DNA of 63,866 nt, filler included, from Guillardia theta CCMP2712 (Eukaryota; Protista; Cryptophyta), in NCBI RefSeq assembly GCF_000315625.1. It is 4 parts of 4 records of this genome, joined end to end, with 100 filler letters (N's around TTAATTAATTAA, not from the genome) between each part and the next. Parts side by side here need not be neighbours in the genome. Positions count along the whole stretch, not along the records: positions 1 to 29,921 come from NW_005434473.1; 3 more parts are not named here. One strand, 5' to 3'. The translations under genes and the position numbers were made by a program. The first letter of the stretch is position 1; each line of letters starts with the position of its first letter. The notes beneath the pieces are model-generated. The model was not told the origin of the DNA. It did no database searches and saw nothing but the letters and a program-made list of their open reading frames with translations. Shown piece after piece: positions 6,954-23,869 of the stretch.

Positions 6954-9003
6954 CTAGGCAAGCGCAAACCCTCTCGCCTTCTTGGTGAGGACGATGAGAG
7001 CAGCGAAGCGGAAGAAGAAGAAGATTCCCACGAGGATCAGCCCGTACGCCCACCAGAGGTCCGGCTTGATGTCATTGGACTCCAGCAGCTGGGCACATGC
7101 TGGGCGTTGGAAGTCCCTGCAGCCGTTCTGGAACTCGTTGAGCAGGAAGAGGTTGATGCCGAACTTGAGGGAGCACAGATACTGGGCCCAACGGATCCAT
7201 ACGGGGATCTGCTGGATCTTGATGAAGAAGCCCGCAAAGAGGATCTGAGGGACGAAGATGGCCGGCGCCGCCTGCATGGCTACCTGAACGTTGGACGCCC
7301 AGCAGCCGGCGAAGAGGGCGGTGGAGGAGGCGGCGACGCCGATTAGCCAGTGGGCGATCACGTGGAGGATGAAGGAGCCATGAAACGCCTCAATCCAGTA
7401 GGCGATGAGGAAGGTGATGATGGACGTGCTGAAGGTCAGGGGGATCTCGGTGCACAGCTTCGACCAGAAGTAGGGGACGGCGCTGTACGTTCCCGTCGCG
7501 TACTCGCGGACGAACCGGGGACGCTCGGAGGGGAACAGGAGGATCACTGGCTGGGAGGCCCCGAACATGCCGCTGATGGCAAGGTTGGCCAGAGCTCCGA
7601 AGTGCGACGCGATGTCAGTGCCGTTGCCGATCTTGTAGAAGATGAGGGAGAAGATGAGGGTCAGTATGACGGCAGAACCGTACCTCGCCCCAGCGTACCC
7701 TTGTCCCTCAGCACACTCTGTACCTCCCTCTTCCCGAGGACGATGAACTGGGTCAGCCATCCTGCCTGCTGCCGCTGGATCTTCTTGAGAGACGCTACGT
7801 CCTCCGTGTTGCTGGCCAGGCTGTGAACGTCCCTCTCCCCCTCGACTTCTCGTACTGCTCGCACACAGCCACCAGCTTCTCCTTCTCCTCCGTCTGCATG
7901 AGGAACATCACGTGGTCAGCCGGGTTGGTCTCTGGGGGAATGGGACGCTCGATGGACGCAAGGTACGACCCCATGTCATGCACGGAGCCGTCGTAGAACG
8001 TCCTGCCGTCGCAGAGCAGGAGGACGCGGTCGAAGAGATGAAAGACCTCTGATGAAGGCTGGTGGATGGTACAGAGGACAGTACATCCCAGCGCCGCAAG
8101 GTCCTTGAGAGCGTTGACGACGTTGTAGGCAGCGTATGAGTCGAGGCCGGACGTCGGCTCGTCGAGGAAGAGGATGGAGGGGAAGTGATGATCTCAACGC
8201 CGATGCTGGTGCGCCTGGAGGAGGAGCAAGTTCAGAAGAGAGGAGGAGAGGGGGAAGAAAGCACTAGGGGAGTAGCGGAGGGGAGGGGAGACAATAGAAA
8301 AGTGATGAGAGACGATATGAAGAGGAGGAGGAGGAGGAGGAGGAGGAGGAGGAGGAGGAGGAGGAGGAGGAGGAGGAGGAAGCACAGACCTCTTCTCTCC
8401 TCCCGAGATGCCCTTGATGAGCTCGTTTCCGATCACTGTGTCGGCGCACTTGTCAAGGTGGAGGATGCTGATAACGTCCTCGATCATCGTCTCTCGTTCT
8501 TCCTTGGTGACCTCCGGCGGCAGCCGCAGCCTCGCACTGAACTCCAGGGCCTCGCGCGGGGTGGCAGTAGGGCAGAGCGCGTCCTCCTGCGTCACGTAGG
8601 CCACGTTGGGGCCGATCTCCTCTGCGCTGATCTCATGCCCGTTGACGGTGAACTTGGAGGTGACAACGTGCCCGTTCATGGACATGATCCTGCCGCTGAG
8701 CACGTTCAGCAGCGACGTCTTGCCGCTCCCACTCGCGCCCATGATGGCGATCACCTCGCCGGGGTTCGCACTCCCCGACAGGTTCTTCAGCACCCGCGGG
8801 TCCTTCCCTGAGCCTCCAATCACCTTGGGGGAGAGGGTGAAGGAGACGTCGGACCAGGCGAAGTGAGCCTTCTGCCCTACCCTGATCGCGCTCTCCTTGA
8901 CCGATCGCCTCCCCATGCTCATCGTCGTCTCCCCTCCTGCCTCCAGCGCGCTCACGTTCTTCATCTCCTCGTTGCTCACCGTCTGGATTTCCCCTGAAGA
9001 CAT
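6954..9003 (-). CDS. ABCG (White-like) half transporter, NBD-TMD order; contains three apparent 1-bp homopolymer frameshifts
   Basis: Walker A GASGSGKT, Q-loop YVTQED, signature ISGGEKR, Walker B ILFLDEPTSGLDS, H-loop TIHQPSS, NPAD motif, and an ABC2 membrane region with ERPRFVREY and IPVWIRWAQY. Confidence 0.93.
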
Positions 9004-17414: not shown

Positions 17415-18144
17415 TCAGAAGAAACCAACCTTGACGTTCCCAGAGGAGGTGACTGATTTCAATCTTCCTGGAAAGCTCATGTCAACGTTCTGACCGATGC
17501 ATATTGAAGTGTTGGTGACCAAAGTACAACTTGAAGAGGTCGGATCGAGTTTCAGCCATGCTCGTCAGACTCCTGGCCTTGCTGTCTACCCACATGTCGA
17601 CCAGGACGTACTGGGAGGAGAGTAAGAAGAAGAGAAGTGAAGGAGAGGAGAAGTGAAGGAGAGGAGAAGAGGAGGGAGGAGCAAGTGAGTCGGATGAGAT
17701 GACGATGATGATTGCGAAGACGATGGAGGGAAGGATAGAGGAGGAGGAGGAGGAGGAGGAGGAGGAGGAGGAGGAGGAGGAGGAGGAGGAGGAGGAGGAG
17801 GAGTAGCTCTACCTTGAGGTTGTGCAGGTCGAAGGCTCCCATCTCAGCGAGACGACAAAACTTTCCTGGAGTACCTGAGGACAGAGAGTGAAGGAACGAG
17901 AGGAGAGGGAACACAGGACAGGGCAGGGCAGGGCAGGACAGGACAGGACAGGACAGGACAGGACAGGACAGGACAGGACATGACAGGACAGGACAGGGAG
18001 GAGGGGCGGAAGGGTGTTCGAACACGTGAGCATAATCTTTGGTAATACCAAACAAGGAGGAAGAGGAAATGGAAAAGCAGGAGAAGGAAGAAGGGGAGGA
18101 GGTGGTGGTGGAAACGAGGAGGAGGAGGAGGAGGAGGAGGAGGA

Positions 18145-18231
<87 letters not shown>

Positions 18232-19346
18232 CGCAACATCAACTCACCCACGAAGATCCTTGAGTCGATCAAAGACCTCTGGAGGCGATGTTGAAGCATC
18301 TGAGGCTTGAGAAGGAAGAGCCTGGCAACGGGGCACTCGCCGTCAAACTCGGAGATGGCGTCTGAGATGATCTTGCAGCGCTCTGTAGAGATACAGAGGA
18401 TGAGGAGGACTGGGGCAGCGCGGTTGGAGATGTATCTTTGCCCTCGCGTGATACTGATGTTGAAGGATGTGATTTCAGGGATCAGATCTGGTCTTTCTTT
18501 CTTGTAGAGCTTGTCGAGTAACACTGCGAAATTGTCATCATCTTCACCAGCACCATCGTCCTCTTCCATGTTGTTATTCATCATCGTCATCTCCTCCTCC
18601 TGCCCCTCCGCGCGCTCCTCCTCTCCTCCTCGTCTCCTCCTCCTCCTCCTCCCTCCATCGTCCTCCTCGTCCTCGTCCTTCTCCTCGTCGTCTTCCACAA
18701 TCATGTCTATCATCTCCATCGTCATCATCATAGCACTTACTTAAACTCAACGGGGGTCTGACAATTGTCAGGGTCACATTCGTTCCAGCTTCTCCACATA
18801 TCATGTTTGCAACGTCGGCAATGCGATCTTTGATCGGACCCGAAGCTATCACCTTGTAATCTCATCTCATTGCAAGTTCACAATGTTCGAATCATCATCA
18901 CAAACCTTCTTCAAAGACTTTCCGTCAACAGAGATGATGTAATCTTGCTCTTTCAACCCGCAGATGTCCGCTGTCAAGATGGAAAAGTGAGATGCTTGCA
19001 TGGTTGTGGAGCAAACAAACGATCTTCTCATCAGAGATACAAGAACTCCTCAACAACCCATCTCATGTCCAATAAGAACATGTTCCGCAATACACTTGTA
19101 CAGCTCAATCAGTGCAAGAGTGTACATGCCTGGGCCTTTTGTCAAAGATTGTTTGATGAGAACGATCCTCCTGTCAGGATGAACAACATCTGGGCGATCT
19201 ATGTCCAGCTCAACACCAATGCCGCAGTTGTAGAGATCCGGGAGAAGTGCGTTGGAGTCTCTGGGATGGGTGTTAGAAAATGTGGGAAGAGAAGGTAAGG
19301 TGAGGTCACATGCTCTATCATCTATCATCATCATCTCCATCATCAA

Positions 19347-19386
<40 letters not shown>

Positions 19387-19426
19387 GTCTCCATCGTCAT
19401 CATCACCATCATCTCCATCATCGTCC

Positions 19427-19464
<38 letters not shown>

Positions 19465-19897
19465 TCCATCATCTTCATCATCTCCATCATCCATTCCCCA
19501 TTCCACATTATCTTTCTTACTTCTGACAAAGTTGAACCTTCCAATTAGGACACAGCTCTTTGATGTAACTCGCAAGCGCGTTTGCGCGATCCCTCTTGAA
19601 GCTGCTGGTGCTGTTGACATACGATGAATACGGCTCAACGAACTGATCCTCATGGATGTCTTGGGCAAGGAAAGTATCTCGTGAGTCCTCGATTGCATTC
19701 TAATAGGGAGAAAAGTCAGACAAGTCGAACAAACACACGAACAACAAGCGGAGCAGCAGCAGCAGCCCTACCACCACCAGCGCCATCAGCAGGAAGATGA
19801 TGGAGATCAGGGAGGAGGAGGAGGAGGAGGAGAAGGAGGAGGAGGAGGAGAAGGAGGAGGAGGAGGAGGAGGAGGAGGAGGAGGAGGAGGAGGAGGA

Positions 19898-19933
<36 letters not shown>

Positions 19934-22900
19934 GCAGCAGAAGCAGCAATTTCAAGATCATGATTCTGGTGTAGGACTTCACAAAGTCTCCAAAGACACT
20001 CAATCACCGCCAACAATGCAGATGGCGTGAATTTCGACATCTCGATAGCTCGAAGCCCTTCGAAGAAAACCACATTCTCAGTCTTGTTGTTCTTACAGAC
20101 CTGCAAGACATTTTTGTCAGATGTTACTCCTTGATCATCACAAAACGTTTCCGTCCATCATGTAAAAGGTTTTCTGCCTCTCATTGTATTTGTTGAGAAC
20201 TGATCGCAACAAAAGAAAACATTCCCGCAACAAGAAAGATTTCAAATTTCAACATCTCGTCCAATCATCTTTCAAGCATGAGAACTGAAAACAGGAGAGC
20301 TGAAAACATCCACAACAATCTACAAATTGAAAACTCACATTGAATGCTTCATTCTCCCGCAGACTTATAATGGAAAATCCCTTGCCAAAAGAGTGCTTCA
20401 GAAACACCTGCTCCAGCGTCGTTCGCAACTGTGACATCTCCACAGGAATCGAAGGCATGAACAGGTATTGATCGTCGAGAGACGACGAAGGTTGTTGTTT
20501 TCCAACCAATTTTGGCAGTGAGGTAGACTGTGCCGACGGAAGTTTTGCTAGTCTGAACCCTATGGCATACATACACCTCAGCCCTCCCTTGCAACTTGCG
20601 ACGCGGGATTGGAACATTGCGTTGCCACGTCTGATCACGCGAACTTTCTCGTCTTGGCGGTTGTTGACGATGTTGGTAGCATACAGCAGTATTGTCTCAA
20701 CACAAGTTGCAAATTTCTTCCTGCTGTTCACGTTCTGCTGCATGTAGTTCAAGGACGATCGCAGGTCCATCCCTCCCTTCCTCTTGATCCAAAACACCTC
20801 ATCCTCATCCTCTTCCACATCATCATCATCTTCATCTGAGTCCGAGTCGTCTTCCTCTGAAGATGAGGATATTGACATAGATTCCTCCTGTTTCTTCCGA
20901 ATCATCTCCTCCAACGACACACCCTTCTTGAAGTGTTCATCGGTGTATTCTATCCCCTTCTCCTGAGTCTTTTTCCTGTTCGAGGCTTTCCACGCTGCCT
21001 CCAGCACTTTCATGGACGGTAACGGTTTCGTCGGCCGGTTCGACATCTGACTTGCAGCGTCGACTCGCTTCTCTTTCCCGTCCTTCTTTCCTTGTGTGTT
21101 TCTCGTTTCCTCTTCATCTTCACTGTCGCTGACGTCCGCCATGTCTTGACCTGTCCTGATCGCCTTCGTCGCTCTTCTTACCTTGGCCAGAATCTCCTCC
21201 TCACGTTTCTTGGGGTCAACTTCGTCTCTCATAACTCCCTCCTCCTCCTCCTTCTCCTCCTTCCCCACGTCCATACCATCCATCTTGAAAGGCTTGTTAT
21301 CTTTCTCCTTTGTTCTCTTTGCCACTTTCTTCAACCTTGTATTAGGTTTGCTTGCCATGACTTTATCATCAAACAATTCATCGACCTCGCCATGTCTCTT
21401 TGAACCATGTTTGCTCCCCTTCAAACCCTCGTCCTTGACCCCCTTGTTTCTTCCTTCGAGTTTCTTTTCTCGGTCTCTCAAGTTGTCGTCGACAAACTCA
21501 TCCTCCAACTTTTTCATCCTCCGCGCCTCCTCCTCCTCCTCCTCCTCCTCCTCCTCCTCCTCCTTTTGCTTCCTCTTCTTCCGTTCTATTTCCTCTTTGG
21601 TCCCTTTGTCTTTCATTCCCTCCCTCTCCTTCTCCCTCTCCTTCATGTCCTTCTTTTCTTTCTTGACCTTGTTTTCCTTGTTTTCCTTGTTTTCTTTCTT
21701 GACCTTGTTTTCCTTGTTTTCCTTGTTTTCCTTGTTTTCCTTGTTTTCCTTGTTTTCCTTGTTTTCTTCCTTGTCCTTCTTTTCCTTCTTGCCCTTTTGT
21801 TTCTTCTTTTCCTTCTTGCCCTTTTGTTTCTTCTTTTCCTTCTTGCCCCTCTCCTCCTCCTCCATCTCTTCGTCTTCTACCGCATCCCGCATCGCTTCCC
21901 AATCAAAATCATCCACCTTCACGTTCTCAAGATAATCCTCCGCATCTTCCAGGGACTTGAAGTCCGCGCTCGACACCTTGAGAGCTTTCAGCTTCTCCTT
22001 CACCTTTTCCTCCCTCTTCCTCCTCTGAACTCTCTCCTTCCTCGCTTCAGCAGCTCCGTCCAGCTCCCGCAGCTTTCCTTCCACGTGCTTCTTCAAGGAA
22101 TCAATCTCAGATTGTTTGTACATGCCCTTGAGAAATAGCTCCTGCCCGTCCTTTAGCTTCTTCTCCAACTTTCTTCTCAACGCATTCTCCTTATCAGTTG
22201 GCGTTCCTGCGTCCTGCTTCTTCCTCTCAAACTCCGAGTCTTCTTCTGAGGAAGAGCTCGATAGCTTCGAAGTCGACCTTGCCTTGCTCACGGCGTTGAG
22301 CGATGTCCAACCTCCCGCTGTCCTCTCCTCCTCCTCCTCCTCCTCCTCCCTGGACGCTCCTTCCGAACCTTCCTCGCTGTTCGACACGTGAAAGCTGAAC
22401 ATTTTCCTCTTCATCTCTTCTCTTCTCCTGGCAACGTCTTCGAACGTCGGCATGATCGCTCCTGTCTTCGAAGCTATCTCCACCTCCCTCATCCACATCT
22501 CCTCGACGCTCTCCAACTTTCCTCTCTCCGCCAGGTTGCTCTTGTGATCTCTCGACGTCTGCGTGTACCTTATCCCCCCCGTTGCTACCTGCGGCCGCTC
22601 CTGCTCCAGAATTTCTTCTGCTCTTGCCCGCTGCCTGTCAGCATACTTGGCGTCTGCCGCCAGCCGTTTCCTCTCTCGCACCCGCTTCCTCCTCTCCTGT
22701 TTCGTCAACCTCTCCTCCTCCTGCCAACCGTCAGATCTCAGAAAACGCCGCCTTGTACATCAACATGGTTGGACATCGTTGGTGAAGACAGCAAACATTG
22801 CAAACACTGTCTGGCATCGCTCATGAAGACAGATATCACTGCAAACACATTTTGACATGGCTCATGAAGACAGATATCACTGCAAACACTTCTCACCGTC

Positions 22901-23112
22901 TCTGAATCCTCGTCCATGCTCGCATGACCGCCACGGAGGCCGTGCAGTCTTAGGAAAGCAGACGCTGTCGTGACTGCCCTGGGGGACATGGCTCTTGAAG
23001 AGAGGGTCGCCGCATGTGGGCATGCGTTGGATCTACAGATCTCAACATTGCAGACTGTCAGGAGGAAGAAGAATCCTGCGATGCTGCCTCCAATACGCTG
23101 ACGGGAAGGCAT
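17415..23112 (-). CDS. Predicted multi-exon protein: signal-like peptide + LRGG motif, charged low-complexity region, PUB domain, Cms1/CMSS1-like domain with an inserted PDZ domain
   Basis: PUB: CVETILLYATNIVNNRQDEKVRVIRRGNAMFQSRVASCKGGLRCMYAIGF. PDZ: CGIGVEL...GPADICGLKEQDYIISVDGKSL...VANMICGEAGTNVTLTIVRP. Cms1-like: PVLLILCISTERC, VARLF, IFVGTPGK, YVLVDMWVDSK, KVGFF*. Splice phases are mutually compatible; the PUB-to-Cms1 join is the least certain. Confidence 0.7.
19325..19490. repeat. Intronic (CAT)n microsatellite; representative of many intronic SSRs ((GGA)n, (CAG)n, (GGACA)n, (GAGCAG)n, (CTCCT)n)
   Basis: Seen directly. Similar tracts occur at ~985-1035, 8323-8380, 17740-17800, 17915-17995, 18115-18230, 19810-19950, 23600-23656, 28540-28760 and 30770-30850. 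Confidence 0.95.
22781..22889. repeat. ~41-bp-period direct repeat in intron 1 of the PUB/Cms1 gene
   Basis: GCTCATGAAGACAGATATCACTGCAAACAC occurs exactly at 22819-22848 and 22860-22889, with a degenerate third copy at 22781-22807. Confidence 0.85.
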
Positions 23113-23869
23113 GGCTAGCACTCGTAGAGCCTGCTGATAATGCTGCCGTCTCAACTCTTCAAAGCATGGCGAGCGAGCGCCTCTGAGCAGCGCCAGCGCT
23201 GCATGGATACAGCTGGTCGAACATGGTCAGACTTGTCGCTCCTTCTCCTCCTCCTTCCTCAACGTGCTCTCATCGCAGCATTTTCATGTCCATACCATCG
23301 CTCCTCCTCCTCCCTTGAAGTCCATTCCGTCGATACCACGTGGGAGATGCGGCCGGTGAGAACGAATAACTACCTACCCCTCAAAGTATGGAGATTATCA
23401 GGGGTACAGAAACAAAAATTGATCATTGTTGTACTGAATAAGGTATGTGAGTAAAATATATCAACATGTCGTTCTACTAATAGACGCCTCGTGGGATCCC
23501 GAAAGGAGGGTCGAGCAAGGGAGGGAAGGAAAAGAGGAGAGAGGAGCAGCAGAGGAGAGGAGAGGAGAGGAGAGGACTGGACTGGACTGGAGGGCAGGGC
23601 AGGACAGGACAGGACAGGACAGGACAGGACAGGACAGGACAGGACAGGACAGGACAGGAGGCGAGGGGAGAGGCGAGGAGGTCAGAGGGAGGTCGATGGA
23701 AGTGGAGCAGATGAGGGAAGCCAAGGAAAAGATTAACAGAGAGAAACGGTTTGACGAGAAGTAGGCAGGACAGGACCAAGAAGAAGAAAAGACAAGAAAT
23801 CAACATATGGAAAATTCAAAAATGTTCTTGATTGTTTGCTTCATTTGAAATGCTTCAAACAAACGTGTT

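Follow-up and report, generated by a model that had tools for sequence, protein, structure and literature searches.

The window analysed here, 63,866 nucleotides of DNA from Guillardia theta CCMP2712, holds on its minus strand a single gene that runs from position 23112 to 17415 and comprises 11 exons and 1,219 codons, and a check of the joined model found it open over 3,660 nt. The gene encodes, in order, a bipartite leader, a long charged linker ending in a PUB domain, and a putative Cms1-like module with an inserted PDZ domain, arranged as follows:

22897..23112, minus strand: exon 1, bipartite leader of 72 codons beginning with the start codon, from translation
23044..23082, minus strand: hydrophobic core of the predicted signal peptide (residues 11-23, IAGFFFLLTVCNV), from Kyte-Doolittle hydropathy
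22927..22938, minus strand: LRGG (residues 59-62; GLRGG 58-62), leader end motif followed by acidic HASMDEDSET
22721..22896, minus strand: intron 1, 176 nt, GT-AG, absent from the X1 RNA contig
20339..22720, minus strand: exon 2, 794 codons, charged low-complexity linker with coding repeats, then PUB, covered by X1 and X2 RNA contigs
20528..20719, minus strand: PUB domain, Pfam PF09409, residues 668-731 of exon 2
20101..20338, minus strand: intron 2, 238 nt, GT-AG, separating the PUB part from the Cms1-like part
20008..20100, minus strand: exon 3, 31-codon conserved linker, both joints in one X2 contig
19521..19699, minus strand: exon 4, N-terminal portion of the Cms1-like module, carrying ALASYIKELCPNW; its joints are seen in an X2 RNA contig
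18741..19260, minus strand: exons 5-7 (19260-19130, 18970-18906, 18852-18741), PDZ domain inside the Cms1-like module
17415..18523, minus strand: exons 8-11 (18523-18248, 17874-17813, 17610-17520, 17467-17415), RecA-like core of the Cms1-like module and stop codon

The exon 1 ATG is preceded by an in-frame stop. Exons 1 and 2 are joined in phase 0 from a GT donor in a 798-nt X1 RNA contig (depth 134) that skips 22721-22896, and a contig of DNA run X11 retains this intron. The joint between exons 2 and 3 is likewise in phase 0, and joints 2–3, 3–4 and 4–5 occur together in one 441-nt X2 RNA contig, of which the exon 2 side spans only 28-30 nt, as a unitig does where spliced and unspliced paths branch. 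With the exon 7–8 joint, also present in an X2 RNA contig, RNA joints support introns 1, 2, 3, 4 and 7; introns 5 (GC-AG) and 6 (53 nt) have no confirming joint among the RNA contigs, and intron 6 is unspliced in an X2 contig. We rejected an alternative exon 5 extended to a GT donor at 19058, which would add to the PDZ fold 24 residues absent from every relative. Retention of intron 2 leads to a frame stop at 20249, and this position marks the exon 2 reading frame running through into the intron, not the end of the protein. The original prediction had described exon 1 as a hydrophobic stretch, an S/A/R-rich linker and FLRLHGLRGG, spliced in phase 0 to a long charged exon with a PUB domain that can in turn splice in phase 0 to Cms1/PDZ exons, an apparent fusion. 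Translation of 23112-22897 contains all three leader elements, the two splices are seen in the X1 and X2 RNA contigs respectively, and the single transcript is borne out by the RNA joints together with a marine-metagenome relative, L012, whose continuous open frame runs on from the PUB tail into exon 3.

Exon 1 encodes 72 residues consisting of SIAGFFFLLTVCNV, an S/A/T/R-rich stretch without an acidic residue, and FLRLHGLRGG, and it has no paralogue in the G. theta genome. Two arginines precede the hydrophobic core, which spans 13 residues, fewer than a membrane anchor needs, and reaches a Kyte-Doolittle mean of 2.54 over 11 residues, compared with 1.85-2.37 for the signal peptides of light-harvesting complex (LHC) and phycoerythrin-alpha precursors from the same genome. 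None of residues 22-31 (NVEICRSNAC) is F, W, Y or L. Wherever among them the signal peptide is cut, the +1 residue would be non-aromatic, which by the criterion of not F/W/Y/L is typical of proteins of the periplastid compartment (PPC) (PMC12136025). A cut between ASA and F (residues 50-53) was rejected, lying 30 residues past the hydrophobic core. The transit-like stretch at residues 28-64 is 43% S/T/A with four R and no D or E. Hydropathy and composition agree with the signal peptide and presequence originally proposed, and the host is the expected nucleomorph-bearing organism, a cryptophyte with 23 phycoerythrin alpha-subunit family matches and exact identity to the published proteins gt_161858 and gt_84077. 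No related contig, nor any of five further fragments from a single-protein metagenome scan, reaches the N-terminus or leader. Judged on composition and layout, the leader is built like PPC leaders of G. theta, sharing with them a signal-peptide-like start, an acidic-free transit-like part with a non-aromatic first residue, an (R)LRGG end and the often acidic start of the mature protein; it differs in carrying LRLHGLRGG in place of the commonest LRLRGG, and the n-region and c-region of its predicted signal peptide are longer than in most. Targeting of the protein to the PPC is thus likely on sequence grounds.

The LRGG end of the leader recurs across the genome. (R)LRGG closes the leader in six of six GFP-tested G. 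theta PPC proteins and in sCdc48 (leaders compared: EF-1alpha gt_84077, 14-3-3 gt_96401, RRM1, CyP, Ubc8, starch synthase gt_164385 and sCdc48 gt_161858), whereas in LHC and phycoerythrin precursors bound for the plastid the leader closes with LRMQ or AMD. Nineteen of 30 unselected genomic LRLRGG-type sites lie 28-115 residues past a start that resembles a signal peptide, whereas 2.6% of background positions do so (p 3e-23), and exon 1 falls in the same range with 62 residues from Met to motif. The chance of an LRGG in a 72-residue stretch is about 0.2-0.35%, and we dismiss a chance origin because the motif recurs in leaders of this genome. LRGG is a recurrent end motif of G. theta periplastid leaders, general rather than particular to this gene, and some two hundred other leaders apparently end in (R)LRGG. 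A search of the open reading frames downstream of ten RLRGG sites returned only a methyltransferase and a RETICULATA-like match. This distribution, at the ends of tested PPC leaders and behind signal-peptide-like starts genome-wide, agrees with the earlier proposal in that LRGG stands where a processing site would be expected, and cleavage may occur after the motif. The label 'ubiquitin-like' did not hold: exon 1 has no ubiquitin match (Pfam; PF00240), and with only about 33 residues between signal peptide and LRGG, against about 70 for a beta-grasp, we discarded the idea that LRGG closes a ubiquitin-like domain, since both the fold and the room for it are lacking. Motifs of the form xRGG, similar to (R)LRGG, also occur in the diatom PPC proteins sCdc48, sCdc48-2, Der1-1, sSec14 and TrxH. 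We found no description of the leader-end motif in an incomplete selection of the literature, and an earlier description is possible.

Exon 2 is rich in charged residues (K 17%, E 19%, D 8%, R 9%) and ends, as proposed, in a PUB domain, matched by PF09409 at 58.3 bits against a cut-off of 34.3 (E 7.4e-16). A six-frame scan of the G. theta genome for PUB returned 63.8 bits at C201:67794-67985, the same locus, and the PNGase PUB structures 2ccq, 2hpj and 2hpl match at E 1.2e-8 and the structure 6sap at 1.6e-4; a word-based protein search with the PUB region gave no match. PUB is the only Pfam family found in exon 2, with no thioredoxin domain. PUB domains bind the C-terminal tail of Cdc48/p97. 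In the alignment, the N, K-x-R, R, N and F columns are identical to PNGase PUB, with Val here in place of the Tyr of the K-Y-R triplet, and these columns probably form the peptide-binding face; 2hpl is the p97-peptide complex. The best solved matches are thus to the PUB domains of PNGase and UBXD1/UBXN6, whose partner domains differ, as neither a glycanase nor a UBX domain is present here. By these profile and alignment matches the PUB domain is real, and it is predicted to recruit a PPC Cdc48.

Assignment of the downstream part to Cms1 is weaker and rests on motif inspection and on relatives. The G. theta exons were searched singly, not as a joined protein, and in this form none of the Cms1 exons, exon 4 included, matched Pfam CMS1 (PF14617); a PF14617 scan of the genome missed the locus, its sole hits being a DEAD-box helicase (L001) and a DDX1-like gene (L002). 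P0006, the closest full relative, matches CMS1 with E 1.7e-5 and 24.8 bits, below the cut-off of 35, over profile positions 123-229 of 250, and matches Pfam DEAD with E 0.13. The Cms1 module of the original prediction thus retains this sub-threshold match in a relative, but the family cut-off was missed and single exons gave nothing. Structural alignment places the Atlas model of P0001 near clusters of CMS1 and DEAD proteins, at TM 0.66-0.70. On inspection, the core has no GxxGxGKT upstream of APVLLILCIS, contains GTPGK, carries VDMW in place of DEAD, and is followed by no second RecA domain, the protein ending 48 residues on with ...KVGFF, compared with ...KIAFF in P0006. Absence of Walker A, of the DEAD motif and of a second RecA domain are traits of Cms1 (PMC9715914). 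Like yeast Cms1 and human CMSS1, the G. theta protein appears to combine a single RecA-like helicase-fold domain lacking Walker A and DEAD with a charged N-region and GTPG(K/R). It differs from yeast Cms1 in being about four times longer (1,219 versus 291 residues), in the PDZ domain placed between N-motif and core, and in the added PUB domain and organelle leader, and the PF14617 score of P0006 lies under the family cut-off.

Sequence searches found no canonical Cms1, either by a phmmer scan of 1.8 billion proteins or in the PDB. A PDB sequence search with exon 8 returned nothing, a four-row profile gave noise and weak DEAD-box matches only, and an Atlas search with exon 4 gave unrelated matches only. 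Within the 87 Mb genome we detected no second Cms1 gene, including the presequence-less paralogue that had been named as a check; as this is the only Cms1-like gene detectable, the host nucleolus would either lack Cms1 or share this one. The position of the PDZ domain inside the Cms1-like module is an observation absent from the original prediction. Single G. theta exons match PDZ_6 at E 0.0028 (17.8 bits) and 0.087 (13 bits), and the relatives P0003 and P0006, to which the G. theta PDZ exons are 47-53% identical, match PDZ at 5.5e-11 (42.5 bits) and 2.4e-9 (37.2 bits), above the cut-off of 27 (PF17820/PF00595). All eight related contigs keep the insertion.

These relatives come from marine metagenomes and are collinear with the G. 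theta gene. Exon 3 is 39% identical to L012 659-751, and because L012 carries the PUB tail and exon 3 in a single frame, the PUB–Cms1 fusion is conserved and under selection. The exon 4 motif is kept in L012, L015 and L036; in L012 and L036 a single frame spans the Cms1 N-motif, the PDZ domain and the core, the equivalent of exons 5-7 being contiguous in L036, and P0006 covers PDZ and core through the stop codon. A word-based protein search with P0001 returned only P0006. Comparison of these predicted proteins indicates that the order PUB, Cms1 N-part, PDZ, Cms1 core is conserved.

We consider it reasonably probable that the locus is a single nuclear gene of G. theta with a 1,219-residue product that is imported into the PPC, the nucleomorph-containing remnant of the red-algal endosymbiont's cytoplasm. 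On the proposed route, the signal peptide would first bring the protein to the ER lumen that surrounds the plastid. The transit-like part would then mediate passage across the SELMA translocon to the PPC, where the protein would be retained, since the residue after the signal-peptide cut cannot be aromatic. The leader would be removed at or after LRGG, and the K/R-rich linker may carry the protein into the nucleomorph. There, by analogy with yeast Cms1, the inactive helicase-fold module would sit on the early small-subunit (90S) pre-ribosome and so work on nucleomorph pre-ribosomes. The PPC contains a nucleomorph-encoded Cdc48, the nucleus-encoded sCdc48 and NVL (PMC5070193), and the terminal small exon of the sCdc48 locus reads ...DDEEDLYS followed by a stop. 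Host Cdc48 ends in ...DDDDLYN. The fused PUB domain would bind the C-terminal ...DLYS tail of one such Cdc48, whose unfoldase activity could then pull a placeholder or neighbour off the pre-ribosomal particle, while the PDZ domain may hold the C-terminal peptide of some partner. A further joint reading, which we find somewhat doubtful, takes (R)LRGG as a PPC-leader cleavage signal that copies the ubiquitin C-terminal tail. Once SELMA transport is complete, a deubiquitinase-type peptidase belonging to the import machinery (for example ptDUP) would take off the transit peptide, itself ubiquitinated, in a single step. On the same reading the gene would be the first PUB-type Cdc48 adaptor in the cryptophyte PPC, with a direct connection to nucleomorph ribosome assembly.

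Three other explanations deserve weighing against import for nucleomorph ribosome assembly. The protein may instead belong to Cdc48/SELMA or protein quality control in the PPC, with PUB as its working part and the Cms1-like and PDZ segments re-used to bind a substrate or partner. PUB is indeed the sole domain above its own Pfam cut-off in the G. theta exons, the Cms1-like part is too divergent for the CMS1 cut-off and had no canonical counterpart by sequence search, and the PDZ matches are of the S41 peptidase or HtrA-like type common in protein quality control. Cryptophytes are moreover reported to be without s_PUB, the Trx-PUB protein of other SELMA systems (PMC12412216), so a replacement PUB protein would make sense. 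We nevertheless judge this role unlikely, since all relatives keep the Cms1 features of N-motif, single RecA-like domain without ATPase motifs and ...K(I/V)xFF end, and the long K/E-rich linker resembles that of a nucleolar protein. With s_PUB, the G. theta protein shares a PUB domain, a PPC-type leader and a presumed function as Cdc48 cofactor (PMC3101018, PMC12412216). s_PUB combines thioredoxin with PUB, and reports of it are confined to stramenopiles and chromerids (PMC12412216), whereas the G. theta protein lacks thioredoxin and carries the Cms1-like and PDZ parts instead; judged by this domain content, it is an analogue of s_PUB and not an orthologue.

The same K/E-rich N-region, typical of nucleolar factors, would also fit the host's own nucleolar Cms1 or a dually targeted protein, in which a downstream start at Met65 (MDEDSETEEE..., in strong context) yields a leaderless nuclear form and exon 1 contributes to a minor isoform or none. 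Its being the sole Cms1-like gene detectable in 87 Mb and the eight upstream ATGs before Met1 in the 5′ leader of the X1 contig, the longest RNA contig, point in this direction. However, the contig joining exons 1 and 2 has a depth of 134, compared with 100-134 for exon 2 in X1, and exon 1 has every feature of a PPC leader, with LRGG at the usual distance, which is very unlikely if it is untranslated. Yeast Cms1 is non-essential (PMC9715914), so a host without Cms1 is conceivable, and a host nucleolar role has in our view a low probability. Least probable, and to our minds a slender prospect, are two products from the locus: a PUB-only protein ending at 20249 through retention of intron 2, with the Cms1/PDZ part made separately or as a minor spliced form. 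In X2, an unspliced intron 2 contig (20127-20366, depth 4.4) accompanies the spliced one (depth 7.3), so that some product may be PUB-only, and intron 6 is unspliced too. Such contigs are also expected from pre-mRNA; no ATG-led start or separate 5′ end was seen for the Cms1-like part, exon 3 has a single internal Met, and in L012 an uninterrupted frame runs from the PUB tail into exon 3.

On the preferred reading, the protein would be imported to act on nucleomorph pre-ribosomes. The nucleomorph encodes only some of the factors that assembly of its 80S ribosomes requires, the remainder being imported, and this gene offers a concrete candidate for one of the imported factors. Its domain order, PUB, Cms1 N-part, PDZ and Cms1 core, is not known from elsewhere, and would tie a predicted Cdc48-recruiting domain to a factor whose yeast counterpart must leave the 90S particle for assembly to proceed. 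As cryptophytes are reported to be without the diatom-type SELMA PUB cofactor, the gene may also supply the PUB protein there. Beyond this locus, LRGG at the ends of PPC leaders provides a simple sequence rule to predict the cryptophyte periplastid proteome and a direct hypothesis on how PPC leaders are removed.

The minus strand of the window between 23112 and 17415 carries a multi-exon eukaryotic gene, modelled here with 11 exons that were joined to check frame and length; similarity searches were done per exon or with the sequences of relatives. The joined model spans 3,660 nt, or 1,219 codons and a stop codon, without internal stop, and its introns comprise nine of the GT-AG type and one GC-AG (intron 5).

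Exons of the PUB–Cms1–PDZ fusion gene
23112-22897, minus strand, exon 1
22720-20339, minus strand, exon 2
20100-20008, minus strand, exon 3
19699-19521, minus strand, exon 4
19260-19130, minus strand, exon 5
18970-18906, minus strand, exon 6
18852-18741, minus strand, exon 7
18523-18248, minus strand, exon 8
17874-17813, minus strand, exon 9
17610-17520, minus strand, exon 10
17467-17415, minus strand, exon 11

Read contigs of four runs were compared with the locus, among them the RNA runs X1 and X2 and the run X11, whose contigs retain introns and mark it as a DNA run. A 798-nt X1 contig (depth 134, the same as exon 2 itself) skips exactly 22721-22896 and so contains the exon 1|exon 2 joint, and the joints between exons 2|3, 3|4 and 4|5 lie together in one 441-nt X2 contig, with the exon 7|8 joint in another; the original observation is confirmed. 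The 441-nt contig has just 28-30 nt on its exon 2 side, as expected of a unitig where spliced and unspliced paths branch. Intron 2 (20101-20338) stands unspliced in an X2 contig (20127-20366) at depth 4.4 versus 7.3 for the spliced form (~60%), and this retention, if real, would yield a PUB-only protein ending at 20249. One X2 contig keeps intron 6 (53 nt, 18853-18905); the same contig is missing a T at 18913, a loss that would change the reading frame. Intron 5 (19130/18970) requires a GC donor (CCAG|GCATGT), and the X2 contig over exon 5 extends 10 nt beyond it. Introns 5, 6 and 8-10 are supported by comparison with relatives, not by RNA: 'KGPADLCGL' in relatives supports intron 5 (KGP|ADICGL), and their C-terminus is evidence for an intron 10 of 52 nt and for a stop codon at 17415. 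The 5′ leader (23113-23300), covered by X1 RNA to about 23296, holds eight upstream ATGs with open frames of 2-21 codons. Exon 2 includes in-frame coding repeats at 21560-21870 (three KKEKKKQKG copies, KENKEN runs and a 12-residue E run) and most of the sequence of introns 3, 4, 8 and 9 consists of microsatellites, trinucleotide or 'cctgt' (19800-19950, 19330-19500, 17900-18240 and 17720-17810); contigs of all runs break at these repeats.

The predicted PUB domain is a solid identification, with a Pfam match above cut-off (E 7.4e-16) and a match to PNGase PUB structures (E 1.2e-8) in which most positions of the peptide-binding face carry identical residues. Assignment of the downstream module is weaker. 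Cms1 exons searched singly gave no match, a PF14617 scan of the whole genome misses the locus, and the related protein P0006 scores 24.8 bits against Pfam CMS1 (E 1.7e-5; DEAD 0.13), below the cut-off of 35. By inspection, the module is one helicase-fold domain without Walker A, DEAD box (VDMW instead) or second RecA domain, traits that are those given for Cms1 (PMC9715914). The Atlas model of a second relative, P0001, resembles CMS1 and DEAD clusters to the same degree. We therefore call the module Cms1-like, with membership of Cms1 unproven. The PDZ domain is above cut-off in relatives. Elsewhere in the genome, a single-exon DEAD-box helicase (locus L001, G000:C1:775579-778866, ORF 841-2847) starts with a signal-peptide-like sequence, has a transit-like stretch with LRLH, and may be another organelle-targeted RNA helicase.

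Relatives share this arrangement. A phmmer search of 1.8 billion representatives with exon 8 yielded just two true relatives, P0001 and P0003; a word search added P0006 and a metagenome scan five further contigs. Eight contigs that carry orthologues are fragments of marine or lake metagenomes in ENA (including Tara) and JGI (L012-L016 and L036-L040 are listed). They share the PDZ-in-Cms1 arrangement, with identities of 47-80% per exon and fewer introns than the G. theta gene. Compared by tblastn and reading of frames, the relatives have their parts in the same order. Contig L012 has the PUB tail followed by the end of exon 2 and complete exon 3 in one open frame, with the Cms1 N-motif, PDZ and core downstream; in L036 the N-motif (LEAYLKELFPAW), entire PDZ and core start share one frame; and P0006 has PDZ and core as far as ...DLKIAFF, then a stop. 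From this order of parts, the PUB–Cms1 fusion and the PDZ insertion are judged to be conserved. The single frame in L012, with the exon 1|2 joint in X1 and the exon 2|3 joint in X2, bears out the original prediction of one fused transcript.

Exon 1 encodes a leader of PPC type, an assignment that is well founded. It has two Arg ahead of a 13-residue hydrophobic core (KD 2.54 versus 1.85-2.37 in the genome's real signal peptides), followed by a 37-residue transit-like stretch that is 43% S/T/A, contains four Arg and lacks acidic residues, and then by LRGG and an acidic run. Residues 22-31 lack F, W, Y and L, which gives the transit stretch a non-aromatic first residue, a published mark of PPC versus plastid proteins (PMC12136025). 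The LRGG had been called ubiquitin-like; it stands as a junction motif but not as a domain claim, as there is no fold, no room and no Pfam match. LRGG is instead the motif that closes a large class of leaders, of which those tested go to the PPC. (R)LRGG ends the leader in six of six G. theta proteins with GFP-fusion localisation to the PPC (starch synthase, EF-1alpha, 14-3-3, RRM1, CyP and Ubc8), and hemE and iddi, 'listed' examples only, have leaders without this end (PMC12136025 supplement). The leader of PPC sCdc48 (L054, G000:C14:927000-936500, 720-1043) ends in MRLRGG, whereas plastid-bound G. theta leaders end in LRMQ or AMD. Membership in this class raises our estimate for the fusion protein, which probably goes to the PPC.

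Across the genome searched (87,145,349 bases, 669 contigs), LRLRGG, searched as a degenerate DNA pattern, occurs at 353 sites versus 255 for a backwards control. Among the first 30 in contig order, unselected, 19 are preceded in an open frame, at a distance of 28-115 residues, by a Met followed by a hydrophobic core, against a background share of 2.6% among 18,600 positions of the same loci (Fisher p 3e-23); exon 1 shows this arrangement at 62 residues.

Examples of loci with signal-peptide-like start and RLRGG: L063-L068, L070, L073-L077, L080, L081, L084, L086-L089

These counts point to roughly two hundred genes with signal peptide, transit-like stretch and RLRGG. Several T. pseudonana PPC proteins have xRGG at the same place (sCdc48 LSARGG, sCdc48-2 DIGRGG, Der1-1 FDLRGG, sSec14 FQIRGG and TrxH LSLRGG; PMC12136025, Appendix S3), and the motif may extend beyond cryptophytes. 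The leader may be cut after GG, with a deubiquitinase-like enzyme as candidate. In a literature search of incomplete coverage, RGG before a ubiquitin-like domain was mentioned for Toxoplasma PUBL only, and no paper tying LRGG to periplastid leaders was found. The genome is that of a nucleomorph-bearing organism, as supposed: its sCdc48 and EF-1alpha (L075) leaders are identical to G. theta gt_161858 and gt_84077, its LHC genes carry ASA|FAP-type leaders, and the cryptophyte phycoerythrin alpha-subunit family has 23 matches. The species is therefore Guillardia theta, which possesses a nucleomorph (PMC6559170).

The function of the fusion protein is inferred from its parts. In early 90S particles of yeast, Cms1 is bound to helices 32-34 in the 3′ major domain of the 18S RNA and must leave before Enp1–Rrp12 joins (PMC9715914). 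The PPC has NVL, a nucleomorph-encoded Cdc48 and a nucleus-encoded sCdc48 (PMC5070193). The sCdc48 locus has a small terminal exon (...AADDEEDLYS*, 7065-7169) about 500 nt past the last D2-domain exon. Tails of the ...DDEEDLYS type are the kind bound by PUB domains. The published sCdc48 model is described as incomplete at its C-terminus (PMC5070193), and the gene is interrupted by an assembly gap (run of N). With a PUB domain attached to the Cms1-like placeholder, Cdc48 would be able to extract the placeholder or a neighbour from the particle. In the main rival reading the protein works in SELMA or in quality control instead of on ribosomes. Less probably, downstream initiation at Met65 may give a host form: the genome yielded no second, leaderless Cms1 gene, the paralogue raised by the original prediction, in a search insensitive for split, divergent genes. 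s_PUB, the SELMA Trx-PUB cofactor, is reported absent from cryptophytes (PMC12412216), and the fusion protein may therefore act as PUB adaptor in their PPC. The original interpretation is thus partly supported: it keeps its gene structure, fusion and PPC-type leader and loses 'ubiquitin-like' as a domain claim. What is new is the domain order in a predicted nucleus-encoded PPC protein, within a protein class that is itself known.
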